Assembly (NCBI RefSeq): GCF_001194135.2
Contig: NC_068984.1
Coordinates: 76,474,758 to 76,538,434, forward strand
Direction: 5' to 3'
Length of the DNA stretch: 63,677 nt
DNA from: Octopus bimaculoides
Taxonomy: Eukaryota
Part shown: piece after piece, positions 2,796 to 63,100 of the stretch
How positions within the stretch are numbered: position 1 is the first letter of the stretch
Layout of the letters: every line of letters begins with the position of its first letter
Notes under the pieces: model-generated
Databases searched by the model: none
Told to the model about the DNA's origin: nothing
The model's input: the letters and a program-made list of their open reading frames with translations, nothing else
Program-made: the position numbers and the translations under genes

Positions 2796-5688
2796 GTTAG
2801 TCAAACTACCTCTCCAAACAGTTTTTTCACCTTTTTTATATTCCTCTCTCTCGTGCTCTCTCTCACTCACACACTGTTTTGACTATTTTTTCTTGATTTA
2901 ACCCTTTAACCATGAAATTAAATGTCATGTTAAATATCTACTGAAAAATATAATTGATACTTTCAGCAAGTCATGTTGTCTTAGTAAACTTAATGTATCT
3001 CAATAGAACATAGTTTCAAGCATGACATTCCTTAACAAAAGATAGATTGGTATATAAAATTGCTTTCTGCAGTTAAGCGTAATGAAATTTTGAGTGGACA
3101 TATCTGATATCTGCTGTAAAATATTTAATGTTAATCTTCAGTGTATGATAACAGATGGATTAGAATTTGAGATCAATTGATAACCTTTTAGAACATTTCT
3201 ACCACATTAAGGAACTTAACAGATTCATGAGCCAGTAAGCAACAGTCTCTATGAGATTGCTTGACATGCTAGAAATGGAAGCAAATTCTTATTCAAACCA
3301 CTGTATTGTCTTAAAAAAGGACACAGGATAATGCAGTTAGGAGTACATATAGAATTTATCCTGAGTACACTGTTCTTGAAAAAAAAATCCTGGATGGTCA
3401 AGGTTTGAATGTCTTTGAGCTTAGATGAGGTTGAAATGGTGCTAAACAATAATTCTTTGTATTGGAAATGTCATTAATTGGTTAAAAAATTTATACACTG
3501 TCTGGAATATCCCTATTAATGAAACCTGATATTGAAAATAGTTTTCTGGCATTGCAATTACTGTTGATGGTAGGATGGAGCATGTTTATGGTTAATAAAG
3601 GGATTCTCTAATTTTTCATAGCATGTAGAAAGGAAATATTTTGTATTGTAATAGTATCCAGTATAATTAAAAATGAAATAGTTTCTCTTAATATTATTCA
3701 TCAATGTTTGTAAAACCATTTTTGTGAGCTATTGAGGGCACTATTGAGTGGTCAATCCAAATTTCCCTCAAATTGCATGCTACTCTTTTGGAAAAGTAGG
3801 CACACATTGGATATGCAAGCTCCAGAGAAAGCTAGGATACTTATAGCAGCATTATTCCATCTTTGTTCATAAGTTGGTTCACTCTGGGCTGACTTGGGGT
3901 TAATTATCAACAACAATTTTTGTGAATGAAAATCATTTATTTCTCTATATTATCACAATTTCTTGGACATCTGCTGAAGAAAATTTCCTAAATTTAAGTT
4001 CTAAACATTCTTCTGTTATGTGTCTGAAATGGAGTGTAGCATATCTGTGAAGTATGTATATTGACAAGGTATGACCTGCCACAACCATGGGAAAAAAAAT
4101 TAACCTTATTTTTTTTCTCTTGAATGTACAATTCTATCATAGTAGTTCTTTTGGTTATGTGTTAGGGAAATGGTTCAGTAGTTGAGCTGTTCATTGACAC
4201 ACCGTCTCATTAGTTCATTTTGTGAGATCTGAGTAGAAGCTACTTATTAGAAATGATTTTGTTCAATCCTAGATAAAACTGATTAGAGATCTGAGTAGAG
4301 TCTACTTATTAGAAATGATTTTGTTCAATCCTAGATAGGACTGATTAAGTAGATCTATAATCAAAGGCATTCTAGTCATGACCATCCTGTCTTTTATTTA
4401 GAAACTGATTATCTTGGATGCATTATTCTGTGTTCTTTATTATGATAATAGGGTATGATTGGAGATTTTGCTGCTGTTTCTAGTAGTTTGTGTAGCCATA
4501 TGGAGCTTCCTTCTATAGCTCTACAGCTCTTTAGAAATTACATAATATGATACAGTAGTGTGAAAGAAAGCCTGTTAAATGAAGAAGGATAAATTTATGG
4601 ATTAAAACTTCATATAAAATGTCCTTTTCATTTTCTATTGCAGAATTTCCAGCCGCCAGCTCAGAATCCCTCCATTCTTTATAGCCAGAGAACACCAACT
4701 ACAAACAATTCAATTGCTACTTCACCTAACGGCACAAGTAATGGAGTTCGACAAACTGGCTTTGTGGAAAAATTACTGGTAAGTATTAATTTATACCTCT
4801 TTAAACTTTATTTAGGTGCAGGAATGGCTGTGTGACAAGAACCTTGCTTCCCAACCACATGGTTCCTGGTTCAATCTCACTGCTTGGCACCTTGGGCAAG
4901 TGTATTCTACTATAGTATTCAGTTGGTCAAAGTACCTTGTGAGTGGATTTGGTAGATGGAAACTGAAAGAAGCCTGTTGTATGTGTGTGATTGTTTCTGT
5001 TTGTCCCCCACCACTGCTTGACAACCAGTGTTGGTGTGTTTGCATCCCTGTAACTTAGTGGTTCACCAAAAAAAAAAAACCCCAAAAAAAACGATAAAAT
5101 AAGTACCAGGCTTAAAAAGAAAGAAGTTCTGGAGGTCGATTCGTTTGACTAAAAATTCTTCAAGGCCCCAGCATGGCTGTAGTCTAATGACTGAAACAAG
5201 TAAAAGAGCACCCTGTATTGAACATTTGATTCAATTTTTCAAGAATTACGACTGTCGGTAATATCTTCCTGAACATCAAAGTGTAAAAGTTGGATTTGAA
5301 TTAATCATTAATCTGGAAGGAATTGGATACAAAACTGTATGAAAAGTTTAACAATAATCAAACAGAAGCATGATTATTTAGGTACAAAATGTATGAAAGA
5401 GTACCTATATTTAGGTATAATATTTAAAATAACTTTCAGGAGAGAAACGATCTAAAGTGCAGTTGGGTCATATACTCAAATAGTTGAACACAACTATTTG
5501 TTTCTTGGGTGCAAGCATTTGGATCTAGTGTTTTATTTCCATGCTAGCGTGGCTTACATGAGAATTGATTTGGTGACTGGATTCTTTTAGGTAAGGGATA
5601 TTTTACATTCCACAGGTCTTAATATTAACAAGGAACATCAACATCACCACCACCACCACCACACTCAGACAGTAAGAAGTGAAATATC

Positions 5689-11300: not shown

Positions 11301-12283
11301 CATGATGTTTCAAATGTCTTGCAAATTTATGACTGCTTTTGCCATAATTTTACATAAATATACAAAGTATGTTTATAAAAATCTACTTTTGCCTTATCGC
11401 TTTGTGCCAAGGAATTGTAAATGTTTATACAGCATGAAGTCATTTTTTAGTATTTTTATAATTTTCTATGTCACTTTTTACTACCACTGAAATCAGAAAT
11501 AGTAATGTGTGTGTTATCTTAGGTAAAATCAAAATAGTATCCCTCTGCTTTTCCACAATCTGTGTGTGTGTGAGTGAGAGAGAGAGAGAGGGCGGGGGGA
11601 CTCAATCCTTTATGAAAATTAGTGTCTGTCAATTAAATAGCAGGTATCATTTTTAAAATTAGAAGTAAGTAACATAAAATATGATGTTAGTAGATTTATC
11701 AGTCTTTACTAGTCTTGTAATCGTTTATCTGAATGTTAAATATATTCTGCAAATTTTTCTATCAAAATTATTTCAGAAATGGTAACATTAGAGCTCGAAG
11801 ACTTGAAAGTGTCATGGTGCAAAATCAAGAGAAATATCAAGGTGTCGTTTGTTCGATGAAAGAGAACTTTGGCTTCATAGAGCGTTCTGATGTTGTGAAA
11901 GAAATATTTTTCCACTACAGTGAATATAAAGGCGATATCAGTGAACTGCTTCTTGGAGATGACGTAGAATTTCAAATTCAGTCAAGAAGTGTAAGTTGGA
12001 CTTTTTTTTTTAATCTTCAATGACTAACTAAACAAATTATAAGTTGTTTTTAATGCGTTACTTGGATATTAAATACATGGCTTTAACTTCATTCAGAATG
12101 TTACCTTATATAGGTGTAGGAGTGGCTGTGTGGTAAGTAGCTTGCTTACCAACCACATGATGCTGGGTTCAGTCCCACTGCATGGCACTTTGGGCAAGTG
12201 TCTTCTACTATAACCTCGGGCTGACCAAAGCCTTGTTAGAGGATTTGGTAGATGGAAACTGAAAGAAGCCCATTGTATATATT

Positions 12284-12322
<39 letters not shown>

Positions 12323-15300
12323 ATTTGTGTGTCTGTGTTTGTCCCCCCAACATCGCTTGACAACCGATGCTGGTTTGTTTACATCCCCATAACTTAGCGG
12401 TTCGGCAAAAGAGACCGATAGAATAAGTACTAGGCTTACAAAGAATAAGTCCTGGGGTCGATTTGCTTGACTAAAGGCGGTGCTCCAGCATGGCCACAGT
12501 CAAATGACTGAAACAAGTAAAAGAGTATATTGTTATATATTATATTGTTTTAGAAGAAGAATTTTTGAGCTGGGAAGTTGGAAATTTGGGCAAAATAATA
12601 AATTTTATCTTTCCATTTTCTCCCACCCACCCTTATATAATGTGGGTAGCCATATATTTGTGCTTGTCCTTTTATAATACTTTAGCCTCTCAGCATCACC
12701 TCCCCCAATTCATTTGAGGGCCTTTTTCCTTTTCTTTGTCATGCAAGTTATTTGGCAACCTCTCATCGTCATGATCAACGCCTGCTTTCCATGCTAGCAT
12801 GGGTTGGACGATTTGACTGAGGACTGGCAAACCAGATGGCTGCACCAGGCACCAATCTGATCTGGCAGAGTTTCTACAGCTGGGTGCCCTGCTCGAATGT
12901 TTTTTTCACGTGCCACCAGCACAAGTGCCAGTAAGGCAATGCTGGTAATAATCACGTTTGAATGGTGCTTTTTACGTGCCACCGGCACAGAAGCCAGTCA
13001 GCTGCTCTGGCGACGGTCATGCTCGGATGGTGCTCTTAGTGCTCCACTAGCACGGATACCAGTGATTGAATTTGATTTCAATTTCACTTTCCTCAACAGA
13101 TCTTCGCAAGCAGAGTTGAGTATCCAAGGAAGGAAAGGTACGCATAAGTGGGCTGGTTACACCCCTGGCATAGGCCATGGGTTATGGCCTCACTTGGCTT
13201 GCTGGGTCTTCTCAAGCACAGCATATTTCCAAGGGTCTCTGTCACTAGTCATTGCCTTGGTGAGGCCTAATGTTCGAAGGTCGTGCTTCACCACCTTATC
13301 CCAGGTCTTCCTGGGTCTACCTCTTCCACAGGTTCCCCTCAACCGCTAGGGTGTGGCACTTTTTCACACAGCTATCCTCATCCATTCTCGCCACATGACC
13401 ATACCAGCGCAGTTGTCACTCTTGCCCACCACATCTGATGATTCTTAGGTCCAACTTTCCTCTCAAGGTACTTACACTCTGTCGAGTATGCACATTGTTA
13501 ATTGTATAAAAAGGTACCTGTAAAACAGTTGACATTAGGAAGGGCATTCAACTGTAGAAACTGTGCCAAAGCTGACATTGGAGCTCAACACAGAGCTCAG
13601 GCTTTTTGGATCCTGTCAAACTGTCCAGTCTATGCCAACATCGAAAATGGACATTAGTTACTGATGATACTGCCTGTAATTTCAGGTCAAGAGTTTGATA
13701 AGTAACCTTGTGTTTGATGTTGTAGTCTGACATTTTGATATCAGTTTCACATTAGTCAAATTTGACATTTATTATTTTTATTTTTTATTAGTTTGCTGAT
13801 AGTTGTTTATTATTATAAACACCTGCTCAGCCTTGATTAAGATGACCTATGATGAACGGTGGTCATACCATATTCATTATTTTTTTTGTTATTGTGTACT
13901 ATTCTGTTTTTTTTTTCTCTTTCTCTAGAATGGTAGTCTGTGATTCATGAGGAATTTTATTGTTATTTCTAGTAGATTGAGTGATTGTAAAATTTCTTGT
14001 TGGCTAATGGGATTGTTTGGTTCCTAGGCTACCAAATGAGGGATTGATGGTTGATATTTTGTTACTGTAGCTATATCCCTGTCAAAAGTCTTTTAACTCT
14101 CATTATTTCTGTCAGTTCACTGTGTTTTAAAGAGCATACTTCTTCACTTTGGACAGCAGCAACACTGTTGTATTGAATAAGGATTAAGTGTTGCATGCTT
14201 TGTAAAACCCTGCTGGTGGTATATGTTGCTTAATGTGTGTTACATGTTGTCCTGATATAATAAATATGTCACTTAATAATGTTAAAATTTTCCTTTTGTA
14301 GAGACAATGGGATTATTCATTAAATAGCCACAAAAACAGTAACCAACCAGAAAATGATGTAAGTGTATAAATTTTATTTCGATGACCTTTGTTTTTCAAA
14401 TGAATATGTTTTATTTTACTATAGTATTTGTCATTCAAACTAAGCAAGTTTTACATTGAAATGATACCTCGCCACTAATGATTTCGGAATGAAACTATCA
14501 CTTCAGCATGAGAATAATGATTTCAAAGTGTGATTATCTCATAAAGATTTATTTAATAGAAAATATAACATTAAAACAACATTAGTATTGTTAACGATGT
14601 AAACTCACCTAGTTAATTATAAGTTTATGTCAGTCAAGCAGCAAGACATAAACCTCATCTTATAGCTATAATACTTACCAGTTTGTTTGAAGAAAAGTAC
14701 AGCATTAACACTCAGTGCTAATTTTCTGAGAATATATGTTATCTTGGTGTGTGACTTCCTTCATTCCTACAACATTGTTTGTAATTTCTACATGAATGTG
14801 TGTTTGGGGAAGGTTTCACTTCCAATATAAATTTTATTTATGAGAAAGCCTTCCTTTTTGGGATTAAACCTAGGTGATTTCTCTGGCAGACGTCTCAAAC
14901 AACAGTTATGTATAGCGTGTATGGTAACTTCAATTCCACAGTGAGCAAGTACAGTACTGAATATTTAAATATTTCTGGCTTTGAAACTGTTCAGTAAAAT
15001 GAAGAAAATTTCTAGGCTGCATCTTTTGTTTGTATGCTGTCTGTGTAATCTTTATTATTTGTACTTTAAAAGGCCTCAACCTAACAGAAACATTACCCCA
15101 CTGGGCAAAATACACAGGGGAAAAAATGCCAACTTCGTATTCTGAGTTCAAATTCTGCCAAGGTTGAGCTTTCCTTTCATCCTTTTGAACTCGATAAAAG
15201 AAGTACTAGTTGAGCTCTGGCAAAATTTCAAGTCTTGTGCCTATAGTAGAAAGAAAAAAAAAATGCTTGCTTGCTGAGTTTGTAAAGGGCAGTAACTCAT

Positions 15301-16918
15301 AGGTTTTAGGGATTAATTCTGTTATACATGCTTTATCAAAATTTAAAAAAAAAATCAAATTGAAAATAACGAAGTTTAGTGTAATAATATCCAGAGAGCA
15401 AAACAATATCTCATCTTCAAGGTTGGTGGTAGTCATTGAGGTAAGATATGACTATAATATAGACATGACTATAGGCTTGTGTTTGTATGTTTTGGTTATA
15501 TATATGTAAAACTTATTTGTTTTGGGGATTGAAGTAATACTACTCTTTCATTATGATGAACTTCTACCTGAACTTGATTAACGTAGATCTGATTTTCAAT
15601 AGATGGCATGGTTTTTCTGATAGCTGAACTTTATTTTCAGTTGCTATGAAATGGAATCTTGTAAAAGAAGAGTTAATATACCTGGTATGCTGTCACTGAT
15701 CTGGTATAGCTAATGAAGTAGCATCTAAGTGAGGGCATGTGGCTTAGTGGTTAGGGCATTTGGCTCACGATAGTAAGGTCGTGAGTTCGATTCCCGGCAA
15801 TGTGTTGTGTCCTTGAGCAAGATGCTTTATTTCATGTTGCTCCAGTCCACTCAGCTGGCAAAAATGAGTAGTACCTGTATTTCAAAGGGCCTGCTTTGTC
15901 ATGCTATGTGTCATGCTGAGTCTCCCTGAGAAGTACATTAGGGGTACACGTGTCTGTGGATTGCTCAGACACTTGCACGTTAATTTCATGAGCAGGCTGT
16001 TCCGTTGATCGTATCACCTGGGACCCTTGCCGTTGTAACCGACAGAGTACTCCTTCCTTTATAGCTAAGTAATTGAAAATATTGTGATTTGTACATGGTG
16101 CAGATTATTTTGGGGGTGGAATCTGTTTTATATTGTTAGTTAAACAGACATTGGGTAAAAAGCTTTGAGAAAATATAATAATCTCTGTTACAAGCAGTTA
16201 TTAGTGGAGAAAGTCCCTTAAGTGGTAAACTATGCAACTAAATCTTAATGAAGTAGCATCTAGAATTTTGAGGCAAAAAAAGAAACTGCATTCCAGATCT
16301 TTGCAGGCTCAGACATGGCTGTATAACTTAGAATTTTGTTTTACAATCATGGTTCTGGGTAATTGAGTATCTTGTAACTGAATAGAACCAATTTGCATAA
16401 GTCCCTCAAGTGAACTTGACCTGGGTTGGAGACCTTTCCTCCTCTGACCAAATTATAAAACCAGCCCAGTAAAACAGATCTAAAATATAAGTCATGTTTT
16501 TTCTTACTACTACTATTTATGAATGATCTTATCATTTTCAGGGTAGGGAAGTTGCTGTAAATATTTCACGATTACCTGAAGGAACTGTGATATTCGAAGA
16601 TGTTGCTATTGAAAGCATAAACGGGAGAATTCTGAAAACCTTAAAAAATTCCAATAAAGGTCGTCAAGGAGATCCCCTTTGTGGAAGAATTGTTTATGAA
16701 GTAGATAACCGGTATGTTTTTTATGTATATATGTGTGTGTGTGTGTATCATCATCATTATCATCATCATCATCGTTTAACGTCCGCTTTCCATGCGAGCA
16801 TGGGTTGGACAATTTGACTGAGGACTGGTGAAACCGGATGGCAACACCAGGCTCCAATCTGATTTGGCAGAGTTTCTACAGCTGGATGCCCTTCCTAACG
16901 CCAACCACTCAGAGAGTG

Positions 16919-16963
<45 letters not shown>

Positions 16964-19900
16964 TATATATATATATATGAATGATCATTATTGTTTTAAC
17001 ATGCATTTTTCTATGCTTGCATGGATCAGACAGAATTCATTGAAGCAGACTTTCTACAGATTGATACCTTTCTGTTGCTAATCTTCACTTGTTTCCAAGC
17101 AAGATAATATTTCCCCATGACCAGGCATGTTTACAGGGAAGATTATGATAGTGATGCTTGTTTATAACAATCCTATGATATCAAGACATAAAGACACGCA
17201 TTCATCCCATTGCTGGAAACTCCAAAGGCAGATGTGAAAATGCTGACAGTGATGTCTATATACGAGTGTACATATATGTTCATAATTGTATATTAGTGTA
17301 CACATTCTCTCTCTGTCTCACTCTCTCCCTCTTTCTTGCTTCTCTCTTTCTCCCATTGTTTTTTTTTAATTGATACAGTGACAAATAGTTATACTTTGTC
17401 ATCAGTTTTGTGAGGTATACCTTTTGATGAGTGGAATTTTAATCTGTGTTGCTATTATTGGTTTGTTACATCTCAGAATCAAATAATCAACCCAAAGAAT
17501 TGTTTCAGCAGTTTCTTTTTATTTATTATTTTTAACATAGGCAAGTTGAAATTCCATTTGGAGACAAGGACCAAAAGGGAGACTTCACATTACAGGTTGA
17601 CGATCTTGTTGCATTTAATATTGCTACAGACCGCAGAGATGGATTACAACGAGCTACACAAATTGAACTTCTTGACTGTACCTTTGAGAAAAGCAAAGAA
17701 ACCAGAGAGGTGGTTAGTGTCATATCTTTACACTTCTCCATTTATTTGTATTGTTGTACAATGAATCATTCCATTCCCCAGTATCTCTCTTTCAGTCCTA
17801 CCCTTATTTACTTACCACACCCACTGTCTCTTTCCTCTATTTCTCTCTATGACAAAAGGAATTCCTGAAGCATCTTTCTTTCTCCTCCTCTCTCTCTGAT
17901 GAAGGGAATTCCTGAAACTCCTCACAGATAGTCCTGTTATCAAAAACAGTAAGAGTCTACAATGTTTTTGATCTCAGAACTATCTTTTGTGTCTTTGAAT
18001 TATAGTTTTCATTCTAGAGCAGTGGCTCTCAATCAGGGTCCACATGATCCTTGGGAGTCTATGTGAGATTTTGTAGTTACAATTTATGTGCTATAAATTG
18101 ACTGTATTTCTACAATACACAAAATATTTTAACAATTTTTTAAATACAATTCTTAATAATATTTAATTAAAAAAATATAATTGAATTTTCTTTTTTAAAC
18201 ACTGAATGAGTATGAGGTCCCAGTAGAGTAAAATAAGGATCAGAAGGGTCTTTAAGCAAATAATGGTTGTGAACCACTGTTCTAGAGCATAAAAGAACAT
18301 GTCTTTATCACTTAATTACAATCATGTTTTTATTTTACTCTTTGTGTGTGTGTGAAAATGAATGAATTTATTATGGAAACAAATGAGTGAATGTATTAGG
18401 AAAATACATAATCTTACCTTCAGAATATTATGGACCCAACAAAAGTGCTCTGTTTTGTTGTTTGACTTGCTAGAAATCACATTTATTATACCCATCTGTT
18501 TTATTAAAAAGAGAACAACACCCTGGTTCTAGTAGTCTTCACAATTGTCTTCAAGTACGATACTTCTAAACTAGGCTAGGCTAGGGATTATTTTGCCAAA
18601 TCAGTTGTGCAACTGAACGTGTGATTAAAAATAATCAGATTCCTTTCTTATTCCATAGGTATGCCGTTGTCTACATTTATAGGTGTATTTTCTTGTTAAA
18701 TATATGTCAACTAGACTCTGAAAATTATGTGAAATTGTCAATAACTAACTAAAATGCTTCATGTGGTTTATTCAACAGGGCATTGTTGCTACTCTGAAGG
18801 AAGGATATGGTTTCATACAATGTGCTGATCGCGACCTCAGAGTTTTCTTCCATTTTAGTGAAATGCTTGATCAAACTAAGGAGTTGAAGCTGCAGGATGA
18901 AGTTGAATTCACAGTAGTACAAGTTGGTATAACTCTCTCTCTCTCTCTGTCCCACACATACACACACTGTGTTTTATTGAAGCTGAGGAAAAACCTCACA
19001 AGCTGTTACTCAGTGTTTATTTAACCTATCATCAGACAAAAGTGAAATTTTGGAACACTACAATGATTTATAAATGTTTAGAAATGATGTGTGGAGGCGC
19101 AATGGCCCAGTGGTTAGGGCAGCGGACTCGTAGTCATAGGATCGCGGTTTCGATTCCTAGACTGGGCGTTGTGAGTGTTTATTGAGCGAAAACACCTAAA
19201 GTTCCACGAGGCTCTGGCAGGGGATGGTAGCGAACCCTTCTGTACTCTTTCACCACAACTTTCTCTCATTCTTACTTCCTGTTTCTGTTGTGCCTGTAAT
19301 TCAAAGGGTCAGCCTTGTCACACTGTATCACGCTGAATATCCCCGAGAACTACGTTAAGGGTACACGTGTCTGTGGAGTGCTCAGCCACTTGCACATTAA
19401 TTTCACGAGCAGGCTGTTCCGTTGATCGGATCAACTGGAACCCTCGACGTCGTAAGCGATGGAGTGCCAACAACAACATAAATGATGCAGAGATAATGAT
19501 TTATTTAGTCATTAAATAAACACAAAATCTAATTGGACAAGAAATCAAAACTTTCCAGATTTAATGGAATCTGTTAGATATGATTGACCGTTGATTAAAA
19601 AATAATATAAACCTGAAAAATAAATAAAATATGAGAACATAACTTGCATATGTACATAATATAATTGAGGAAAGGGAAAAAATTATAACTGTTATAAAGT
19701 GCTTTTGGCCTTTCCAACAGTATATATCTTTTACTTGTGCCACCTTGAAGAATTTTTAATTGAATGTGTCAACTCCAGTACTTTTTGTTTTTATAAGCCT
19801 GGTACTTATTCTGTTAGTCACTTTTGCCAAACCACTAAGTTACGGGGATGTAAAAACACCAACACTAGTTGTCAAGTGGTAGTAGGTGGGGGGACAAACA

Positions 19901-25900: not shown

Positions 25901-28900
25901 TGGGAGTTGGGGGTGGACACTAAACGATGAAAGGAGAAATAAGGAGCGAATTGAGAGTACTTGGGTGGAGATGGCACTATACTTGCTGGAACTAAGGCAT
26001 AAAGGCCATTATAGTTTCAGTAGAAAAGGCAGAAAGGAAATGATACTTATGTTGGCCAGAGTTTGGAGTGTATTTATGAGTGTCTTCATAGCAATCATTG
26101 TGTTTGGATGCAGTCTAAGATGCATGTGTGTGGCAACAGCAGCAGCACTGTCCTAGATGTGGGGACAGTACCCTATTGTTAGTCTCTCCTGAGCCTTGTA
26201 CAGGACTGATAGTTGATGATAACGTTTTAGAGCAAGCACAGTTGTCATTAGATATCTTGTGATCAAAGCTTAAGGAATTATGTTTTCTTAGTAAAATAAT
26301 TTTATCACTGCTTATGTTAAATTGCCTCTTTTTAAGTGTTTTGAAATTTGACGTTTCATTTTCAGGAAATTATTTGGGAAAAAGGGACCCTACAAGGAAA
26401 GATTATTCGACCCTTACGCATTGTCAATCCTGAACAGGATGAATATAGTGGTCTAGTACAAGTTGGTTTGGATGGTAAGTGCCTCAGTTCATTCTACTCT
26501 GTACCCTTCATTATTTTCTTAAACTCCTCAATATGTAAGAGATTATTTATAAATTTATTTTATTAGATCTTTTTAATTGACATTATTCTATTGTCTTTCT
26601 TGTACTTACTTATGCTTTAGTTTTACATATGATCTGATTCGTTAATTTTGTGACTTATATCTGGGTAGGCTGTACACTTTTTTATGGAGAGTGATTACAT
26701 TTTTGCTGAGCTATTAAAATACTGGTCTAGCACTCTAAACATTTTGTAGGGAGGCAAGTTACTAGTATCAGAGTTGATTGCTTGGTAACTGCCATGTGGT
26801 ATTTAGTTGCTTCCCTTTGTATCCTCTTTCACTTTGTGAGGTTTTTTTTTTTGTGTCCCCCACTGTCTTTTTGCCCTTCCAAGATTGATAAAATAGATAC
26901 AGTCAAGTTTCAGGGTAAATAAAATAGATTGGTCTACTCCTCAAAATTTGGGTCCTTTTGCTTATGTTAAAAATCCTTGCAGTTATAAATATTGAAGAGT
27001 AAGGAAGGTGGATTACAGAAATATGTCAGATAAGCCTAGTTATAATCTCTGGAAGCTCTGAGTTCAGATACTGCCTGGGTTGGCTATAAACTTTCTTAAA
27101 TATGTATGACCTTGTGTCAGTGTTTGAAATCATTGTTAATATTAATACTGCAAAAGGCAGTGAGCAGGTAGAATCCTTAGCACACCAAGCAAAATGCTTA
27201 GTGGCATTTTGTCTGTCTTCTATGTTCTGAGTTCAAATTTCGCTGAGGTCGACTTTGTCTTTGATCCTTTTGAGGTTGCTAAAATAAGTTGATCACTGAG
27301 GTCAATGTAATCAACTTACCCCTTCCCCAGAAATTACTGGCCTTGGCCAGAATTCGAAACCAATACTAATACTGCATGTCTGTGTGGTTAAAAGGTTTGC
27401 TTCACAATCACATGATTCTGGGTTCAATCCTGCTATGTAACGCCATAGCATCTTTTTGATCAAAGCATTTAAAAGAAATTTGGTAGATGGAAACCTGTTA
27501 TACCCTCACACCTGTCTACCATCTCTCTCCATCATTTCTTTTAGTCATCATATCAAGCCACTTGAGACAAAAGCATTTGATCTGTGCATAGTGAATTCCC
27601 TACTTTTTGGGATCTATCATACCTTTCCATTCCCACATTATCTCTTTTCCTTTTACTTTTCCTTTCTCTCTGTTTCCAAATGATTATGATAGAGTGGGCA
27701 GGGGTGGGATTTCGCTCTTGCATCTCTCAAATGCTCTCCCTAGGTCTTCTGACTCTATGTCCTCCTGTTTACCTCGTTCATGTTACCTTGAGAATATACT
27801 TCATTCCTCCTCCTCTCTTCTGTTCCTTCTCTGCTGCCACCCTCTCGACAACAAATCCAATCCTCTCATCATACTGTAACTTCCCACAATACCTCATCTG
27901 AAGTCATCTCATTCTCTTTCTTGTTCTCTCTTTTATACAACCTCATTAGTGCTGATGGCACATTAAACACCCATTTTATTACTCTGCAAAGTGGTTTGCA
28001 AATTGAGCAGAGACAATATTGACTTGAGGGGATTCTTTAGTCATGCTGCAGGCAAGACAATTTCTGTTGTGCTGGTGCCATAAAAAATACATCTATTACA
28101 CTCTATAAAGTGGTTGGTGCTTGAAAGGGCAGCCAGCCAATAGAGAATAGGCCAAAACTGAAACACAGAAGCAAGTTGTCTGACCCATCAGAACCTGTCA
28201 AAGCATCCCACCCGTGCCAACATGGGAAGTGGATGTAAAAAATGATGATGGTTAGATATTAGGAGAGGTTGACACAATCAGTATTGTGCTGAACAAAAAT
28301 ACCTTGTAGTATTTGGTTCTTTTCATTACACCTAAGATTATGCCTCATAGTGATAAAAAATGCAGGGCAAAATATTGGTGCTGTTGTAAGGCAAAAAACA
28401 GCTGCCTTTCAATGCCTGAACCCTGTAAAATAATAAAAGAATATCATATTAAAGTTGTAAGTTATTACACACCTTAAAATGTGAAAGATCGTATTTATGA
28501 AATAATTTCCTATTTTCATTTCTTTTTGTGTTACAGAAGATGAAGAGGAAGTGTACCAATATGGTATTACTAGCCTGGCTGATAAACGAGATTTCCTCCA
28601 GAAGGGTGATGTTGTAAAGTTCCAGATTGCATCAGTGAAAGCCACTGGGAAAAAACGAGCTGTTTGTGTGGCTGCTATGCGTAGCTATGTGCGTGCTAAA
28701 GTTGATTCTGTGAAGGGATTGGTAAGTTAAATTTTATATGGTTTCTGCATTTGAAGTAGACAAATCACAAATCCCTCCAGGCATATGACTCTGCTCGATC
28801 AGTAGGAAAGGCATGGGCAGAAAGATGCACCCAGTGCAAGCTATGGACACATAAGAGGTGCAGCAATATCAGAGGAAGGTTGACTGAAGGGTTTTACTTA

Positions 28901-30134: not shown

Positions 30135-33100
30135 CAATGATTCTTTCTACTATAGCACAAGGCCTGAAATTTTGGGGGAGAGGTTAGTCGGTTACACTGA
30201 CCCTAGTGCTCAACTGGTGCTTATTTTATTGACCCCGAAGGGATGAAAGGCAAAGTAATCTCAGCGGAATTTGAACTCAGAATGTTAAGACAGATGAAAT
30301 ATTGCTAAGCATTTTGCCTGACAGGCTAATGATTTTGCCATTTCATTGCCTTAATTATTATTAATAATCATAATAATGGTTTCAAATTTTGGCACAAAGC
30401 CAGCAATTTTGGGGGAGGGAGTAAGTCGAATGCATTGGCCCATGTACTCAGCTATCCCCCCTCCCCTAAATTTCAGGCCTTGTGCCTATAGTAGAAAGGA
30501 TTATTATTATTATTGGTTTCAAAAAAGATGGACATGTCTTTGGAAGCTGTGAATTTTTTGCCCAATTTTCATTGAAAGTTTTGTAATATATATTGATATT
30601 TTTGCATATTTCTGTAGCCAAGCCAACTGTGCTCTTGCTGAGCTAATCGGTTAGGCAGAATTTTCCCCTTTTAGGGGCGAATTTCTCATTTCAAATTTTG
30701 AAATTTCAATTTCCAACTTCAAAATTTTACAAAAAATGTCTATGAAGAGAACTGTAAGCTGTTCCCTTCTTTGCACACCACACCCTCTGCAGTCGAACGA
30801 CAACATATCTCAAACACCAAACGTAAACTCTCTATGCCCAATCCACACCTTAAAAGGCAAAGAAGAGAAAGAGAAAAAGTGTTCCAGCATGTGCAGCACT
30901 AGAGAGGGGAATGAAGGCTGTTCTATGGACTGCCTTTCTAGCAAACATTTCCTTGCTCTCACCACCACTATTGCTCCTACACTGGAGAGGGAGGAAGAGA
31001 GAAGTGGGAACATGTACCAGTGAGATTACCACCAGCAACACCACCAAGACCAACACAAGCAACAACAACAAGGCCAAGTGCAATGGCTTCGCATATGCAG
31101 TGAAACAAACCTTAGATGAAATAAATGCTACAATTTATCATAGTCCTCCAGACAATAACAGAGGAATTCAAGACAGGATGCTCCTGGGAGCTCTATGCTA
31201 ACTTCCAAAAGTCCCTTGCCTGGCAGTGCTACCGAGGGGCGCTGCCTGTTCAGGATAAACTTTACAGGCATGGAAGTGCCGTGAGCTGGGCCTGCCCAAG
31301 TTGTGCTCAGCGATGTAACTGTTCTGTATGCACTCGTCCAGTGCTCGAGTATTGCTGGCCTGTGGGTTTATGTCGAACAGCTGCTGTCGTGTGTAGGATG
31401 GATCTGGCTATCAGCTGAATCCATAGTGAGAATTGCCCTGCCGACCTCCTTTAACTGGGAGGGGAAGGTAATTTTCATTTGTCTGGTTTGTTTGAAAGGG
31501 CTAAAGTCAGATACTTTCCTCTTTGACCAAGGCCTCATCAACTTTTTCAAGTTCCACTTGAAAAGAAAGGTGAGAGTAGAGAGGGAAGTGTTGTCTTCTA
31601 GCTAATTTGTTAAAAGGTGGGTGAATGTCAGAAGAATGACCAATCTGGATGAACCAATTCTTAGATTACACCTGTAAAAAAAAAATAGGTATAAAAGGGA
31701 GAAAGGGTTCTTGCCTTGTTGACCAGGCACCCGTGGCTTTCATCCTTTCAGGGTTGATAAAATAAGTACATGTCGAGTACTGGGGTCAATGTAATTGACT
31801 TATCCTTTCCCTTGAAATTATTGGCCTTGTCCCAAAATTTGAAACCTATACATATATTTCAGTTCTTAATGTTTTGAGTTTGTATCTCAGCAGGATAAAT
31901 TTTGCCTTTCATCCTTACAATGCTGATAAAATACCAATGAAGTACTGGGGTCAATTTAATCTACTAATCTTTCCTCTTAGATTTTTGGCCTTGTGTCTAT
32001 GCTAGAAACAATGATTATATATTTTTTTAAAGATTTTATACGTTTTTAGTAGAAAGTGGGTTATACATCTTTAGATTGTATACCTGACTTTCTACTATAA
32101 AATTAAAGAAATTGACAGAATGCTGAACTCCAGACTAAACAACTCAAACAACATTTATTTACTTGGTAAACATACATATCTTTTAGTGAGAATAACGAGC
32201 TGTCGAGTATAAGACCGAAAGATGTAGGGACAGCTTTAAACACACGTCCATGCTCAATCGCTGGCCAGCGAGAAAGAGAATGAATTGAGCGGGAAACGCT
32301 TGCTTGTTTTATTCTACGCATGCGCAGGCGTTACTACACATTCATATTTGCATAAATTTTTCTTTCAGTTTGGCTTCCTGAATTATGAAGTTGAAGATGG
32401 CAAAAAGCTATTCTTTCATATGACTGAAGTCCATGACAGTATTGAGCTGCAACCTGGTGATGAAGTTGAATTTGTAGTTGTGCAGAATCAAAGAAATGCC
32501 AAATTTTCAGCTTGTAGTTTGCGTAAAATTACGTAAGTTACATTTTTCTCATTTCTTCTTGTTACTTTTACAGTTTTTACATTCTTGTTTTTTTTTTCTG
32601 TTGCTTATACCAGGCCAGTCTTCATAGAGCAAACTTATGATCAAAGGTGTTCCCACTATGAAAATCCTGTCTTGTTGAATATTAGAGGCTACATGTAAAA
32701 AACATGTCTCCTTCTTAAAGACATTAGAGTGTCGTTTCAGGTAGATTTGGTCTGTATTTTCAAGCAGGTTGAGCTAACTTTTGCTGGCAATGTTTCTGCT
32801 TTTATATAATGGGGTATGGTTTGGCAGAATTGGAGTCGCAGATGAAATTTCTTAATTCAAATACTATCATTTTTCTGACTTTACATCAGCCTATGCCCCT
32901 CAGCCGGGGTTACCTGATGAACAGAAGAACTGATTTTATGACACCCTTTTGCAGACTACCTTGTTGAAGAATGACAGGGACCTTCTCTTTGTGGTTGGTG
33001 ACTTCAATGGGCATGTTGGATGACATGCAGGGGGCTTCCATGGCATATATGGAGGCTATGGTTTTGGTTCTCGCAATGAGGAGGGAACCAGGCTGCTGGA

Positions 33101-36100
33101 ATTCTGCAATACAAATGATCTTATGGTTTGTAATACTAACTTCAGGAAACCTGCCAGCCACCTATTCACCTACCGATCTGGTGGACACATTAATTAAATT
33201 GATTATATCCTCGCCAGGAAACAGGAAAGATGGCTATTTATAAATGCCAAAACTTTCCTCACAACATAGATTAGAATGCACCCCACAACATAGATTAGTA
33301 GTTAGTGACTTCAGGATCGGCGCTAAATGGATGCCCAAAAGATGGCCAGCATGGAAAAGAAGGGTCTAGAAGCTTAAAGATCCTGCAAATGGACAGAGAT
33401 TTAGAGACGTATTACTTGAAGCTTTTGAAAAAATAGAGGGGGATATAACATCACATGATGTGGAAAACAACTGGAGGTTTGTACGTGACAACCTGTTGAG
33501 GTTACTGACCAGATCTGTGGATAGTGCAAAGTCCCCTCTCGACCTAAGGTAATGTGGTGGTGGAACAGTGTAGTTGACAGGGCCATTAGGGAAAAGAAAC
33601 AGGCATGGAAGGACTGGAAGAATGGTGGTAGCAGGGAATTGTATCAGACTGCCAGACGGGAAGCGAGGAGACAAGTTTACTTAGCCAGAGGGAAAGCAGA
33701 TAAGAAAATACTTGCCAGTGTTCTGCGTTGTGAGGACCAAAGACTTGAAGTGTTTCATGTTGCAAAACAGTGTGTGAGAGAGAGTCGTGATGTCATAGGA
33801 GAGAAATGTGTCTGCATGGATAATGGCTCACTTGCATTTAATGAGGCTGAAAGGAAAGAGACTTGGAGATGCCAATATGAAATTAAGAGAATGAATGGGA
33901 GAAAGAGAGTCTGCCGAATGTTGACCCAACAGAGGGACCAGCTATCCGAATTGACAGTACCTTGGTAGATAAAGCAACTAAGGGTATGAAGACAGGGAAA
34001 GGTCCCAGCCTATCAGGAATCACTACAGAGATGCTTAAAATATCTGGCGATGTCAGCTGTAGTCTAGTCACCCGTATAGTCAATCAGGTGATACATGACG
34101 GAGTCTTACCCAATGACTGGTGTAGCAGCACCACAGTCAACTGCTACAAAGGTAAAGGTGATGCATTAGATTTGAATAATTACAAAAGTATCAAGTTGTT
34201 GGATCAGGTAATGAAAGCCAGTGAGAGGGTCATAGCCCACTAATTAGAGAGAGAGTCACTCTAGATGAGATGCTGTTTGGGTTTGTGCCAGGGAGAAGCA
34301 CCACTGATGTTATATTTCTGGTAAGACAGCTGCAGGAGAAATATCTAGCCAAAGATAAACCTCTGTACCTGGCTTTCGTTAACATGGAGAAAACCTCTGA
34401 CAAGGTTCCCCGATCCTATATCTGGTGGTCAATGTGGAAACTAGGGATTAGATGAGTGGTTAGTGAGAGCTGTACAAGCCGTGTACAGAGAAGCTGCTAG
34501 TAAGGTGAGGGTTGGCAGTGAGTACAGTGAAGAATTCCGGGTTGGGTAGGGGCCCACCATGGATCAGTCCTCAGCCCCCTCTTATTCATCATAGTCTTCC
34601 AGGCAATAACAGAGGAATTCATGACAAGATGCCTCTGGGAGCTCCTCTATTCTGATGACCTTGCTCTAATAGCTAAATCAATATCAGAACTAGAGGAGAA
34701 GTTTCAGGTATAGAAGCAAGGTCTAGAATCGAAGGGCCGTAGACTCAATCTAACAAAAACCAAAGTCATAATAAGTAGGAAGGCAGACAAATCACAAATC
34801 CCTTAAGGTAGATGGCCTTGCTTGATCTGTAGAAAAGGCATAGGTAGAAGCTCCATAAGATGTACCCGGTGTAAGTGATGGACACACAAGAGGTGCAGCG
34901 ATATCAAAGGAAGGCTAACTGGGAAGATAGTTTTTGTGCAGAAAACAGCTTCTGTTACATTCCAGGGAAAAAAAACTACAAGTAGTTGATAGCTTCCATT
35001 ACCTAGGTGACCAAGTCAGTAGCAGGGGTGGATGCTCTGAGAGTGTAGCTGCTAGAATAAGAATAGCCTGGGCAAAGTTCAGAGAGCTTCTACCTCTGCT
35101 GGTGACAAAGGGCCTCTCGCTCAGAGTAAAAGGTGGACTGTATGACCCATATGTGCGAACAGCCATGCTACATGGCAGTGAAACATGGGCCGTAACTGCT
35201 GAGTACATGCGTAAGCTTGCAAGGAATGAAGCTAGTATGCTCTGCTAGATCTGTAATGTCAGTGTGCACACACGACTGAGTGTAAACGCCCCGAGAGAAA
35301 AGTTGGGCATAAGAAGCATCAGATGTGGTGTGCATGAGAGACAACTGCGCTGGTATGGTCATGTGTTGCATATGGATGAGGACAGCAGTGTGAAAAAGTG
35401 TCACACCCTAGCAGTAGAAGGAACCTGTGGAAGAGGTAAACCCAGGAAGATCTGGGATGAGGTGGTTAAGCATGACCTTCAAACACTGGGCCTCACCGAG
35501 CCGATGACAAGCAACCGAGACCTTTGGAGATATGCTGTGCTTGAGAAGACCCGGCAAGCCAAGTGAGACTAACCGTGGCCTATGCCAGTGCAGAATAACC
35601 AGCCCATTTAAGAGTACTGTTCAGTCATGTGGCAATAAGCTGTGCTTGCAAAGACCTGTTGATGTAAGTGAAGTCATTGTCATGGCCAATGACAGTACCG
35701 TCTGTTTGGCACCCGTACCAGCGGCACATAAAAAACTCTGTTCGAGTCTGGTTGGTGCCAGTGCCGCCTGGCTGGTCCCGTATTAGTGGCACATAAAATG
35801 CACCATTCGAGTGTGATTGTTGCCAGTGCCACCTGACTGGCTTCCATGCTGGTACCACGTAAAAAGCACCATTTGAGCATGGTCATTGCCAGTGCTGCTT
35901 GACTGGCTCCCATGCTGGTGGCACGTAAAAAGCGTCATTCAAGCGTGGCCAGTGCCAGTACCGCCTGACTGGCCCTCGTGCCAGTGACACATTAAAGACA
36001 CCCACTACACTCTTGGAGTGGTTGGCGTTAGGAAGGAAGGGCATCCAGTTGTAGAAACACTACTAGATCAGATTGGAGCCTGGTGCGGCCTTCTGGCTTG

Positions 36101-48391: not shown

Positions 48392-48946
48392 NNNNNNNNN
48401 NNNNNNNNNNNNNNNNNNNNNNNNNNNNNNNNNNNNNNNNNNNNNNNNNNNNNNNNNNNNNNNNNNNNNNNNNNNNNNNNNNNNNNNNNNNNNNNNNNNN
48501 NNNNNNNNNNNNNNNNNNNNNNNNNNNNNNNNNNNNNNNNNNNNNNNNNNNNNNNNNNNNNNNNNNNNNNNNNNNNNNNNNNNNNNNNNNNNNNNNNNNN
48601 NNNNNNNNNNNNNNNNNNNNNNNNNNNNNNNNNNNNNNNNNNNNNNNNNNNNNNNNNNNNNNNNNNNNNNNNNNNNNNNNNNNNNNNNNNNNNNNNNNNN
48701 NNNNNNNNNNNNNNNNNNNNNNNNNNNNNNNNNNNNNNNNNNNNNNNNNNNNNNNNNNNNNNNNNNNNNNNNNNNNNNNNNNNNNNNNNNNNNNNNNNNN
48801 NNNNNNNNNNNNNNNNNNNNNNNNNNNNNNNNNNNNNNNNNNNNNNNNNNNNNNNNNNNNNNNNNNNNNNNNNNNNNNNNNNNNNNNNNNNNNNNNNNNN
48901 NNNNNNNNNNNNNNNNNNNNNNNNNNNNNNNNNNNNNNNNNNNNNN
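48392..48946. other. Assembly gap (others: 7428-7437, 53590-53821, 54380-54490, 62383-62925)
   Basis: N runs. Confidence 1.
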
Positions 48947-49686
48947 GCAATCCAATTATGATAATTTAAAAAAAAATGCTAAAAAAAAAAACTACAGGAT
49001 GAATTAAAAAAAAATGACTGTACTATATGTGTTGTTTGTTTTTATTTTGTCTGTTCCACCTTTATTTTTTGTATTTTATTTATTTTTTTCTGTCCAATTG
49101 GAAACTACTTTTACTGTCTGGATTACCTAATCTCAACTGAAGGGCAATGCCCAAAATATTAGGCATCTGTTTCTTTTACAACTATTGAACTTTTCCTATC
49201 GTGAACCAGGTTTCATTATATCTGTTTCTCATTTTTGATTAAGCACATTTAAGATGTAGAATTAATGTCAATCAAACATGGCAATTATGTCTTTCAGCAC
49301 TCTTAAATGTCTTTTTTTAATCTTTTTGCTTGTTTCAGGTATTGGGCTGCGGCCATGCTGGAGCATCGCCTTGAAGGGTATAATTGAACAAATCAACCCA
49401 AGACCTTTTTTTTTTTAAGTGTGATACTTAATCTGTTCTCTTTTGCTGAATCTCTAAGTTACGGGTGTGTTGGTAAACTAACTAACAAAGGTTGTCAAGC
49501 AGCAAGGAAGTAGACACAAGACACATGTATACGCAATGGGCTTCTGCATAGTTTCTGTTTGCCAAATTCACTCAAAAGGCATTGGTTGGCATGGGGCTAT
49601 AGTAGAAGACACTTCCCCAAGGTGCCGCGCAGTGGAACTGAACCCAAAACCATGTGGGTGCAAAGCGAGTTTCTCAACCATACAAC

Positions 49687-49935: not shown

Positions 49936-51078
49936 AGGACATCGTGCCCTGGTTGTTGCGAAAGCTTACAATGTCCATGTCAGCACCATCTATCGCCTGT
50001 AACAGCAATACAACACCAACAGCACTGCAGATCGTGCCCACAGAGGGCGCCTCCGGGTGACCACGCCCAAGCAAGTCCGCTTCATCCACCTGCAACACCT
50101 TCGTGATCGCTTCAGCCTGACCAGCGTGACAGTTCGCGAGACCATTGGTACTGGACAGTGACTCATCAGCGACGACACGATACAACATCGAGTGGCCGCC
50201 AACAACCTGCATTGCTGTCGTTCTGCTCGAGGGCCTGCCCTCACCACTCGCCATCGTCAGTGGGCTACACAACACCGACATTGGCGGTATCAACAATGGA
50301 GGTCGATAGTCTTCTCTGACGAGAGCCGGTACTGCGTTTCTATCTCGGACGACAGAGTGAAGGTGTGTCGTAGGAGGGCTGAACGCTACAGAGACGTATG
50401 TGTCATGGAGAGAGACGCATGGGGTGGCCGAAGCATCATGATTTGGGGGTGCTATAGGTCTGAATCAGAAAATTGGGCCTCATGTGTTCCAAAATGTTAG
50501 TGCAGGCAAAAGGAATAGCATCACAGTACAGCGCTACGTTGGTCAGATCCTGAGACCTCACATCGTGCCCTTCTTCGCGCGTCACCATAGCTACGTGCTC
50601 CCTCCCACACGGCCAGGGTCACCATGGACTTCCTTCGTCAGCACAGCATCAGAACCATGCTGTGGCCGGCTCTCAACTCGAACCCAATTGAATACCTGTG
50701 GGATGAAATCCATAGACGGCTGAATCAGGTGGCCCCCGAGGCCAACAACTCGTGCGGAACTGGAGGTAGCTTTCCTCAAGGTGTGGGCACTGGTGCCAAT
50801 GTTTTTTGTGAACCGCCTCATGCACTCCATGTACCGACGGTGTATGGCCGTTTTGAACACTCAGGGAGGACATGCACGGTATTGAACATGTTACGCCCTA
50901 CAATATCAATATGCTGGATCCGCCCACTACCAGAATACATAACAACGACCCATAGACTGTAGTGAAAGAACATAAAAAACATTGACTTTATCAGATTTAT
51001 CAAAAATTTTTCTCTGACATAATGAAATCAAAACATATTTCACAGCCACACGTCTCGCGTTTCTTTTGCGGTTCAGTG
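49936..51078 (+). mobile_element. Tc1-family DNA transposon relic, left end truncated
   Basis: HTH remnant VAKAYNVHVSTIYRL, IVFSDESR, IMIWG, NPIEYLWDEI; right end ...GCGGTTCAGTG followed by TA; the second catalytic Asp region appears deleted. Confidence 0.85.
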
Positions 51079-53455: not shown

Positions 53456-53939
53456 GGGTAACTGGAGCGAGAGCCAATTGATATGACATAAAAAATAGGC
53501 CTCTAGAAGATCTATCTCTGTTTTCCTTAACAGAAGATGGTAGTGCTGGTCATAAGATAGCTCTCTCTCTCCCTCTCTCTCTCTCTCTCNNNNNNNNNNN
53601 NNNNNNNNNNNNNNNNNNNNNNNNNNNNNNNNNNNNNNNNNNNNNNNNNNNNNNNNNNNNNNNNNNNNNNNNNNNNNNNNNNNNNNNNNNNNNNNNNNNN
53701 NNNNNNNNNNNNNNNNNNNNNNNNNNNNNNNNNNNNNNNNNNNNNNNNNNNNNNNNNNNNNNNNNNNNNNNNNNNNNNNNNNNNNNNNNNNNNNNNNNNN
53801 NNNNNNNNNNNNNNNNNNNNNATATATTAGTTTATGTATATATTAATATTATCTCAGTTATTAAAACTTTCGATAATTTAAATACGTTAAAAGTTACCAG
53901 AGGTAGCAAAATTACACTAAAAAACAAGATATCACAGCC

Positions 53940-54170: not shown

Positions 54171-54490
54171 AGTTACACAGGAGAGCTAGGAAGAAGGGGA
54201 GATAATAAAATAATAGTGATCCCAAAACGAAGGTGCGCGTGCATGTGTATGTGAGAGCGTGTATGTGCGTGGGGAAGGGGGCTGGTGACATTAACGTGTG
54301 CGTGTGTGCATGCGTAGGTGTGTGAATGATGGTGTAGATGCTGGGAAGTGGTCAGTGCTAGTGTGTGCGTCATATATATNNNNNNNNNNNNNNNNNNNNN
54401 NNNNNNNNNNNNNNNNNNNNNNNNNNNNNNNNNNNNNNNNNNNNNNNNNNNNNNNNNNNNNNNNNNNNNNNNNNNNNNNNNNNNNNNNNN

Positions 54491-60141: not shown

Positions 60142-63100
60142 CTGGAATGATAATAACAACAATAATACGCATGAATTATTAAATTGGATGCGAAAATAAT
60201 TTCAGTCTACAAAAACGTAATGATATTTTATAAAACAAACTGTAGAAAATGTGATCTATGAAGACTAGATGTGTGCGGTGTTTGAGGATTTTATGAAAGC
60301 CATTAATAATATAAAGGAATAGGTATTGAAAGTTTGATACAATTTAGGCTCAACGGAACATCGTTGCTACTTTGCAGTGCTTTTCTATTCTACAAAATAA
60401 TAGTGACACAAAGAGATAATGGCAGCGCGTTGTTGCTGCGTTATCCTTGGCCATTTCTATCACATCGTTTGGGTGTGAGTCTAATTCTATCCTTTTGTTT
60501 AACATTACCCTCTGGCTCTTGGAAGCGCCCAGTCTGTTGCAAATATTCGGGCAAGGTCTCCGGTAAGAAGAAGTATTAACGAAGAAACCTCAATGAGGAA
60601 TATTTAAAATGTTTCAGAGAATCAAAGAATACCACAATTGTTACATTGTAGATATAGCTGACATGTCCTAATATACTCCGAATGAATTAAAAATTTATAT
60701 TATCTTTTAGATTCCGAATATATTTAAATAATACTGTATCGAATAATCCTTCAGGATTTCCAAAAGAATACTCACGCTGATTATATTTTAATTAGAAAGG
60801 ATTTTCAATCAAACTAATATAATCTTTAGAAACTGAAGCATCCATTGAATGCTTTCGCGCAAGGTATTGGAAAGATAATTTTTTAAGGGGCATTTTTCCA
60901 ATTGCACAAATATGAAAGATTAACTGCAGAAAACGGTCTAAGGGTTTTAGGATTAAAATTTACAATTTTGTACTAAAATTGTGTGTACAACTTAAACTTA
61001 GTTTGATATTATTATTTTTAAGAATCTTACGATATCTGTCAGTTTAAAGAAAATGATATTATATTACATAAAAGAAATTTCAGGCGATATTTGTATATTG
61101 GTACATTGAAAGTGCGCGGGATCCATTCTAATGTATGTGATAATATTTCTTATGGTTTTGATATGAAACTCTACTGTACCATCCGGTACATGAATCTCTA
61201 CTGTACCTCCATGTTCTTGAAGTGCTACACCATCGTCTTTTGAAATTAGAGAATTGTATTTGTATGCTACATCATTTTTTCTTTGCTGTAGGACTTGTGT
61301 TATTTCTGGTGACATTTTAGTATTTCTTCTGTTGTGTAGATTATGTGGTATCTTTGCTCCTGTACAGACTGTGTGCAATGTATTATGTGTCTTAGTGTTG
61401 GGTAGTGATAGTGTAGAGTATATTGCGTGTTATATTATTGGGAGTCAACTGCGTAGCGTGTGTATTGTGCATTAATTATATAAAACCAGTATTGTGCTGG
61501 ATCACTGGGTGGTAATTATAGACTAGGTGTTGTGAGTAGATAGTGCACTGTTTGAGTTGTGCTATTGAAGTGAAAGTGTCTTGTGTAGGGTTTGTGTTGT
61601 GTCGAGCAGCGATATTTTCTGGGCTGTGTGAAAATTACCCTTGTATTGATTTTATGTTTTAGTTCATGATGTTTTCTTATACCCAGCTCTCCAATTATTG
61701 CAGTTACTGTTTTCTATTTTATGCTCCGCATCCTGTTTACTTTGATTTCAAGAGCCCTGTGCTTTAATACCTTCTCCATTCGCACCCGTGTGATATGTTG
61801 GTTAAAAAGGTGAAGATGTCTATCAGTATACATACATTTTCGTACTGTACTTGATAATGATATGGGTACGGTTTTCTTTGATCTCTGTATAAGCTTTATT
61901 AGCTATGACTCTGTTGACTATGGATAGGTCTTTACCTTGTACTGTGTTAATATCTTTTCTGATATATATATATACACATATAGTTTGAATGAGTGCTCAA
62001 AACCACATTGGTGGATAAAAATTTTTTATTTGTGAGTTAACAAGGCAACCAATAGTTTTATGTGAAGAGATTTTCACAATTTTTCAAGCGTGCCACATGG
62101 ACGTGTTGGTACTCATCTCCATTTCGGATGACAATACATATATTGTAATTATTTGTGCCTAGGTATTGGTCCTGTTTAGGTAAAATACATCCTTCTGCTT
62201 TTGCTTTTAACTCAAAATAACCTTTTGACCTATAGTTGGCTTTTACTCAAGCTTACTTCTCTGTCGCGTATTGCAGAAGTGTTGACCAGCCACGGAGTTG
62301 TTTCTCATTCCCCACTTTCTTTTGAATATCTTCGAATCCCAATTTGTCTTTTTCTTTAGCAATCCTCCTCCTCCTCCTCCCCNNNNNNNNNNNNNNNNNN
62401 NNNNNNNNNNNNNNNNNNNNNNNNNNNNNNNNNNNNNNNNNNNNNNNNNNNNNNNNNNNNNNNNNNNNNNNNNNNNNNNNNNNNNNNNNNNNNNNNNNNN
62501 NNNNNNNNNNNNNNNNNNNNNNNNNNNNNNNNNNNNNNNNNNNNNNNNNNNNNNNNNNNNNNNNNNNNNNNNNNNNNNNNNNNNNNNNNNNNNNNNNNNN
62601 NNNNNNNNNNNNNNNNNNNNNNNNNNNNNNNNNNNNNNNNNNNNNNNNNNNNNNNNNNNNNNNNNNNNNNNNNNNNNNNNNNNNNNNNNNNNNNNNNNNN
62701 NNNNNNNNNNNNNNNNNNNNNNNNNNNNNNNNNNNNNNNNNNNNNNNNNNNNNNNNNNNNNNNNNNNNNNNNNNNNNNNNNNNNNNNNNNNNNNNNNNNN
62801 NNNNNNNNNNNNNNNNNNNNNNNNNNNNNNNNNNNNNNNNNNNNNNNNNNNNNNNNNNNNNNNNNNNNNNNNNNNNNNNNNNNNNNNNNNNNNNNNNNNN
62901 NNNNNNNNNNNNNNNNNNNNNNNNNCCTCCCCCTCCCCTCCTCCTCTGCCTCCGCCTCCTCCTTAATAGCAGCTGCAGCATTAATGTTAACACTTCAATT
63001 AAACAATATCGTGCAAGTTTAATCATGCAATTTTTATTATGATGTTTGTAATTCCAAGTGAAGTAGACTTCTTGAAGAACATTTATGGCCCATCATTAGA

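Follow-up and report, generated by a model that had tools for sequence, protein, structure and literature searches.

As a translational regulator, CSDE1 (UNR) is highly conserved, and it is unusual for one of its cold-shock domains to carry an insertion specific to one clade. In bacterial cold-shock protein-oligonucleotide complexes, the residues at the boundary between the β4-β5 loop and β5 border the nucleic-acid platform. Variation within the family has been described in mammals, where alternative processing of CSDE1/UNR alters the N-terminal region with CSD1 and CSD2 and gives isoforms whose roles are, according to a review, unknown (PMC11005786). The octopus gene analysed here resembles these isoforms in the region affected but differs in the kind of change: 19 residues stand in the β4-β5 loop, whereas no insert in that loop was seen among the mammalian isoforms, and human CSD2 (PDB 2YTX) shows a 19-residue gap at this place. 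A literature search combining CSDE1 with octopus or cephalopod found one relevant cephalopod paper, which treats Ov-CSDE1 as a candidate reference or target gene, and no description of the octopod/decapod exon contrast reported below. The nearest known sequence is the CSDE1 protein of Octopus bimaculoides itself (XP_014783652.1; UniProt A0A0L8G6C8), from which our finding does not differ. Exon 7 of octopus CSDE1 is a coding exon that is spliced into mRNA, extends the β4-β5 loop, occurs only in coleoids among the homologues compared and is under purifying selection in octopods; on balance, we think it probable that octopods include it constitutively or predominantly.

Exon 7 within the CSDE1 gene

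The window, that is, the whole stretch of 63,677 nucleotides analysed here, holds the complete CSDE1 coding region on its forward strand (2757-38493; 18 coding exons, 2511 nucleotides, 836 amino acids). Positions 1757-39493 are 100% identical to O. bimaculoides GCA_001194135.2 CM046604.1:76476514-76514250, and translation of the 18 exons, joined at GT/AG boundaries, matches RefSeq XP_014783652.1 (P0121) exactly. The protein is a CSDE1/UNR orthologue, in which canonical cold-shock domains alternate with non-canonical ones of the CSDE1 type and are joined by the C-terminal region: its AlphaFold2 (AF2) model is made of repeated five-strand units, and its PDB matches are domains of human CSDE1 and Drosophila UNR. 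Precomputed Pfam matches of P0121 are PF00313, PF23456, PF14444 and PF12901. Further Octopus CSDE1 entries are XP_029634673.1 and XP_036358152.1 from O. sinensis and CAI9721198.1 from O. vulgaris.

Coding exon 7 occupies 14302-14358 on the forward strand (AGACAATGGGATTATTCATTAAATAGCCACAAAAACAGTAACCAACCAGAAAATGAT). It has 57 nucleotides in phase 0-0 and encodes residues 269-287 of XP_014783652.1 / A0A0L8G6C8, the sole CSDE1 protein listed for O. bimaculoides. On its 5′ side lies coding exon 6 (11777-11990, forward strand), the source of strands β1-β4 in the second canonical cold-shock domain. Exon 6 closes in phase 0 with ...EFQIQSRS, followed by gtaagt and by intron 6 (11991-14301; 2311 nucleotides). 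On its 3′ side, intron 7 (14359-16541; 2183 nucleotides) ends in ttttcag, after which coding exon 8 (16542-16711, forward strand) begins in phase 0 with GREVAVNI, the β5 strand of that domain. The acceptor of exon 7, summarized as ttttccttttgtAG, comprises the polypyrimidine tract and acceptor AATTTTCCTTTTGTAG at 14286-14301, directly 5′ of the exon; 11 of the 15 tract positions are pyrimidines, compared with a range of 9-14 among the other exons of the gene. The donor, GTAAGT at 14359-14364, agrees with the consensus at 6 of 6 positions. Both splice sites match the strength of those of the gene's constitutive exons.

Exon 7 is open in frame 0 only, with stops in both other frames, and the open stretch around it runs to only 22 codons. 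Since it is too short for an ORF listing, it was taken as unannotated in the earlier note, which described a hidden cassette exon at these positions. Every statement made there about the sequence itself, from the exon boundaries, the acceptor and the GTAAGT donor to phase 0-0 and the 19-residue peptide, agreed with our analysis. The exon is real, in frame and 57 nucleotides long but not hidden, as its peptide is already within XP_014783652.1. Likewise, the comparison with the phase of 'intron 6' was right about phase 0 but wrong about the intron, which is really introns 6 and 7. Exon 7 is already known, being present in RefSeq and UniProt, and therefore nothing changes for genome annotation.

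Elsewhere in the gene, the first 9 nucleotides of exon 2 (4644-4652; AATTTTCAG, before CCA) encode NFQ and end in TTTCAG, a possible tandem acceptor. NFQ is missing from the Sepia pharaonis models P0122 and P0244 (…PQWKPPAQ…) and is present in transcript-derived decapod and octopod proteins.

Transcript evidence and conservation among octopods

Exon 7 is a genuine expressed coding exon, with both of its junctions found in RNA and a coding type of conservation. The Logan contig L004 (run SRR3401912, 2928 nucleotides) is intron-free and RNA-derived, and aligns to the window in 18 blocks that include 11775-11990, 14302-14359 (100% identity) and 16542-16711. The junctions 11990>14302 and 14358>16542, which had been proposed as the check on the exon, are both joined in this assembled spliced contig. 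Its identity is approximately 98% to O. bimaculoides and likewise to O. vulgaris and O. sinensis, and it therefore comes from a third Octopus lineage.

The insert is carried by O. vulgaris and O. sinensis (P0241), by this third Octopus lineage (P0243) and by Argonauta hians (P0242), and in the genomes of O. vulgaris, O. sinensis and Argonauta the exon lies within the corresponding intron each time. Its nucleotide sequence is shared without change by O. vulgaris and O. sinensis, the GTAAGT donor is identical in these two species and Argonauta, and Argonauta keeps an AG acceptor with a pyrimidine tract (TTTGTTTCCTTTGCAG). Of the 57 nucleotides of exon 7, 8 differ between Octopus and Argonauta; they comprise one replaced codon (CAA>ACT, Q>T) and five third-position transitions that are synonymous. 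For exons 6 and 8 the counts are 21/150 and 24/150, with no residue change in exon 6 and 3 in exon 8, and the flanking intron is unalignable past the splice signals (42-46% ungapped identity). The synonymous bias of the changes in exon 7, set against introns that have decayed, argues for purifying selection on the translated peptide. Octopus and Argonauta agree in 18 of the 19 residues, from which we infer that the sequence of the insert matters, and not its length alone.

The A. hians gene model (L007/P0242, 845 amino acids) also contains, where the second canonical cold-shock domain begins, a 9-residue duplication that is probably an artefact of the model.

Sequence features alone are insufficient to single out exon 7. 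The introns of the gene, 33 kb in all, contain 4 decoys that equal or surpass exon 7 in both acceptor tract and donor, 2 of them symmetric and open. At looser thresholds, which are those met by most real exons of CSDE1, the number of decoys rises to 161, and 11 of these are both symmetric and free of stops in the host frame. With 2 to 11 comparable candidates in the same gene, depending on the threshold, exon 7 might itself be a chance pseudo-exon, or an annotation artefact spread between gene models, but we regard this as very improbable. Exon 7 is set apart from the decoys by the transcript contig, the matching annotated protein and the comparative data. The spliced contig L004, which was assembled from reads, includes it, and its substitutions relative to Argonauta are biased towards synonymous changes while the introns have decayed. 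Against an artefact stands the presence of the peptide in gene-model records of four octopod species, deposited under differing accession types (RefSeq, UniProt and others). A reading of the sequence only can recover a real 57-nucleotide exon that ORF lists miss; splice motifs alone would flag, within CSDE1, 2 to 11 false candidates of equal plausibility.

Two decoys within introns, at 12097-12132 and 28337-28456, are symmetric and open and equal exon 7 in the strength of their splice sites. An origin of exon 7 from a repeat or transposon was also considered and rejected, the region being single-copy in the window.

Position of the insert in the cold-shock domain

The AF2 model of the 836-residue protein was obtained with an alignment of 82 sequences and has a mean pLDDT of 76.9. 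In this model, the strands of the second canonical cold-shock domain, which is domain three in the nine-domain scheme of CSDE1, span residues 217-224, 228-233, 239-243, 259-267 (β4) and 289-297 (β5). Residues 269-287, which make up the insert, are coil with pLDDT below 50 and lie between β4 and β5. Human CSD2 (PDB 2YTX) aligns on both sides of the insert with a clean gap of 19 residues. The model and the alignment agree in placing the peptide where the earlier note had put it, in the loop before the last β-strand of this domain.

Exon 7 lengthens the β4-β5 loop by a hydrophilic stretch of 19 residues with predicted disorder. Such an extension may alter how the second canonical cold-shock domain behaves as part of the multi-domain RNA-binding array. 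Alternatively, the loop could serve as a short interaction or docking motif or as a site of modification. By analogy with cold-shock protein structures, the longer loop might affect nucleic-acid binding along the margin of the platform.

Distribution across animals and the decapod counterpart

We surveyed the insert in an alignment of 128 full-length CSDE1 homologues. There is no insert at the exon 6/8 junction in 117 of these, which come from molluscs, annelids, brachiopods, hemichordates, amphioxus, arthropods and echinoderms, while an insert of exactly 19 residues is found in 9 homologues, all of them from coleoid cephalopods. This fits the remark made earlier that the peptide was unfamiliar from other UNR proteins. 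The remaining 2 are amphioxus isoforms (Branchiostoma floridae P0219 and P0222) with VRN inserted at exactly the same exon junction (...TRN / GKEVA). The amphioxus insert differs from that of coleoids in having three residues only, and it looks like the product of an alternative donor 9 nucleotides into the intron and not of a separate exon. Splice variation at the β4-β5 loop junction is therefore not confined to cephalopods.

In the decapod Sepia pharaonis, a 57-nucleotide exon lies in the corresponding intron (L008, 7517-7573), with acceptor ttttttgcAG and donor GTCAGC. It encodes TVAHDQKSQCQGSVVTKSE, of which two other decapods have close variants. The decapod exon is like octopod exon 7 in its intron, its length, its phase 0-0, its insertion point between β4 and β5 and the hydrophilic nature of its peptide. 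It differs in sequence, however, with no significant similarity in global alignments tested against shuffles (p = 0.28 for nucleotides and 0.68 for protein), and its donor GTCAGC is weaker than the octopus GTAAGT. When the exon peptide of each clade was searched for in the intron of the other, no remnant was found in either. Given these alignments and the empty reciprocal search, homology of the two exons finds no support. Each version is conserved within its own clade. A comparison of the window's introns with the decapod genomic contigs L001-L003 matched exon 6 only.

A further difference from the octopod exon is that the decapod exon is demonstrably alternative, with skipping the more frequent of the assembled forms. 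The annotation of S. pharaonis includes CSDE1 proteins of both 851 and 870 amino acids. In the protein collection, the decapod form that skips the exon (P0245, 819 amino acids) is found in 92 blocks and the form with the insert (P0123) in 2 runs.

A further exon varies in decapods. Coding exon 10 of the window (18779-18922; 144 nucleotides, phase 0-0) encodes most of the third canonical cold-shock domain (...EFTVVQ). Three decapod species have full-length transcript contigs (P0123, P0124 and P0125) from which its orthologue is missing through skipping, and all three contigs carry the 19-residue insert. P0247 and P0244 combine the insert with a retained exon 10 orthologue. The co-occurrence of insert and skipping in three decapods hints at coordinated splicing.

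A broader scenario can be put forward, tentatively, for these observations. Coleoids might have gained a 57-nucleotide exon in the β4-β5 intron, either once with complete sequence turnover or twice independently, and might regulate it in such a way that octopods mostly include it and decapods do so as a minor form, paired in three decapods with skipping of the 144-nucleotide exon. Lineage-specific isoforms with a remodelled RNA-binding array would result. The comparative pattern of a coleoid-only insert, two unrelated sequences of equal size and differing splicing appears undescribed and is of moderate interest. Equal site and length, unrelated sequence and different splicing make the octopod/decapod contrast a tractable example of how exons arise or turn over within a conserved RNA-binding domain.

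Constitutive or cassette use in octopods

Since exon 7 has 57 nucleotides and phase 0-0, skipping it would preserve the reading frame. This and its small size, together with long flanking introns (2.3 and 2.2 kb), speak for the earlier proposal that it is a regulated cassette in octopus too, tissue-dependent and possibly neural, under RBFOX/QKI-type control. The alternative decapod exon of 57 nucleotides at the same junction (P0245 in 92 blocks, P0123 in 2 runs, and the 851- and 870-residue proteins of S. pharaonis) also speaks for a cassette, as do the mammalian CSDE1 isoforms that likewise vary in the CSD1-2 region (PMC11005786). We nevertheless find cassette use in octopus doubtful. No isoform that skips exon 7 is present in the three Octopus annotations or in Argonauta, and the octopus splice sites are of consensus, constitutive strength, unlike the Sepia donor GTCAGC. 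The protein names of O. bimaculoides and O. sinensis carry no 'isoform X' label. From the absence of skipping isoforms in the available annotations and transcript assemblies, inclusion in octopods is probably constitutive or predominant.

The protein collection was also queried directly. Two annotated Octopus proteins and P0243, the protein of the Logan contig, served to derive seven hypothetical isoforms that lack exon 7, exon 10 or both. These were looked up exactly among its 15 billion proteins, and none was present, including the 817-residue sequences that skip exon 7; octopus transcript-derived sequences are very few in the collection, with one full-length contig. A search with a 134-residue junction peptide that includes the insert gave only short ORF fragments, and the word index missed octopus P0121. 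Several apparent inserts among the matches of this query were rejected as exons, being read-through of short introns. A 238-residue query across the skip junction matched only proteins of 145-411 amino acids, none of them from a cephalopod, and is therefore uninformative on skipping in octopus.

The intronic flanks likewise give little sign of special constraint. Among Octopus introns, conservation of the exon 7 flanks does not rise above the 93-96% background, and in Argonauta the flanking introns are unalignable, which again argues against a regulated cassette. Stretches of intron 6 (approximately 12.1-12.5 kb and 12.77-13.47 kb) and of intron 7 (approximately 15680-16000) are missing in O. 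vulgaris and O. sinensis and are, on this comparison, lineage-specific insertions. They account for the distance from exon 6 to exon 7, which is 2311 nucleotides here and approximately 1150 nucleotides in O. vulgaris and O. sinensis.

Splicing motifs near exon 7

The case for RBFOX/QKI-type control came from three motifs, all within 150 nucleotides of exon 7 and all present on the forward strand as claimed: TGCATG at 14192-14197, 110 nucleotides upstream of the acceptor, ACTAAT at 14474-14479, 116 nucleotides downstream of the donor, and GCATG at 14506-14510, 148 nucleotides downstream of the donor. Counts over the forward strand of the whole window are 73 for GCATG (0.35 per 300 nucleotides), 23 for TGCATG (0.11) and 32 for ACTAAY (0.15). 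The flanks of exon 7 are not enriched in (U)GCAUG or ACUAAY relative to this background, and TGCATG and GCATG are at chance level there. The three motifs are kept in O. vulgaris and O. sinensis, where the background identity of introns is 93-96%, and neither TGCATG nor ACTAAT is conserved outside the genus.

In more distant relatives the motifs are not conserved. Neither GCATG nor ACTAAY lies within 300 nucleotides of the Sepia exon on either side, and TGCATG is absent from the upstream flanks of both Argonauta and Sepia. The only GCATG near the Argonauta exon lies in GCATGCATG at +168-176, which is directly followed by GGTTGGA. This copy is borne by a repeat, as GCATGGGTTGGA is the core of a dispersed element found 8 times in the window, where 0.21 copies would be expected. 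Given the background frequency, the lack of conservation beyond Octopus and the position of the Argonauta copy in a repeat, the motif argument carries little weight. Regulation of the RBFOX/QKI type, as proposed from the flanks, is thus weakly founded, with motifs at chance frequency that are missing at the truly alternative exon of Sepia.

The copies of the GCATGGGTTGGA repeat in the window are at 358, 1084, 6948, 12797, 16798, 29046, 36120 and 37571. They are often preceded by a CATCAT... run, and the same element is found downstream of Argonauta exon 7.

Other features of the window

Runs of N, which mark assembly gaps, make up 2.3% of the window; those downstream of CSDE1 are at approximately 48400-48950, 53590-53850, 54410-54490 and 62380-62950. 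By eye, open frames could be recognized in two further regions. Those at approximately 33000-35600, within intron 17, look like the remnant of a retroelement reverse transcriptase, while those at approximately 50000-50960, downstream of CSDE1, look like a transposase of the Tc1/mariner type.
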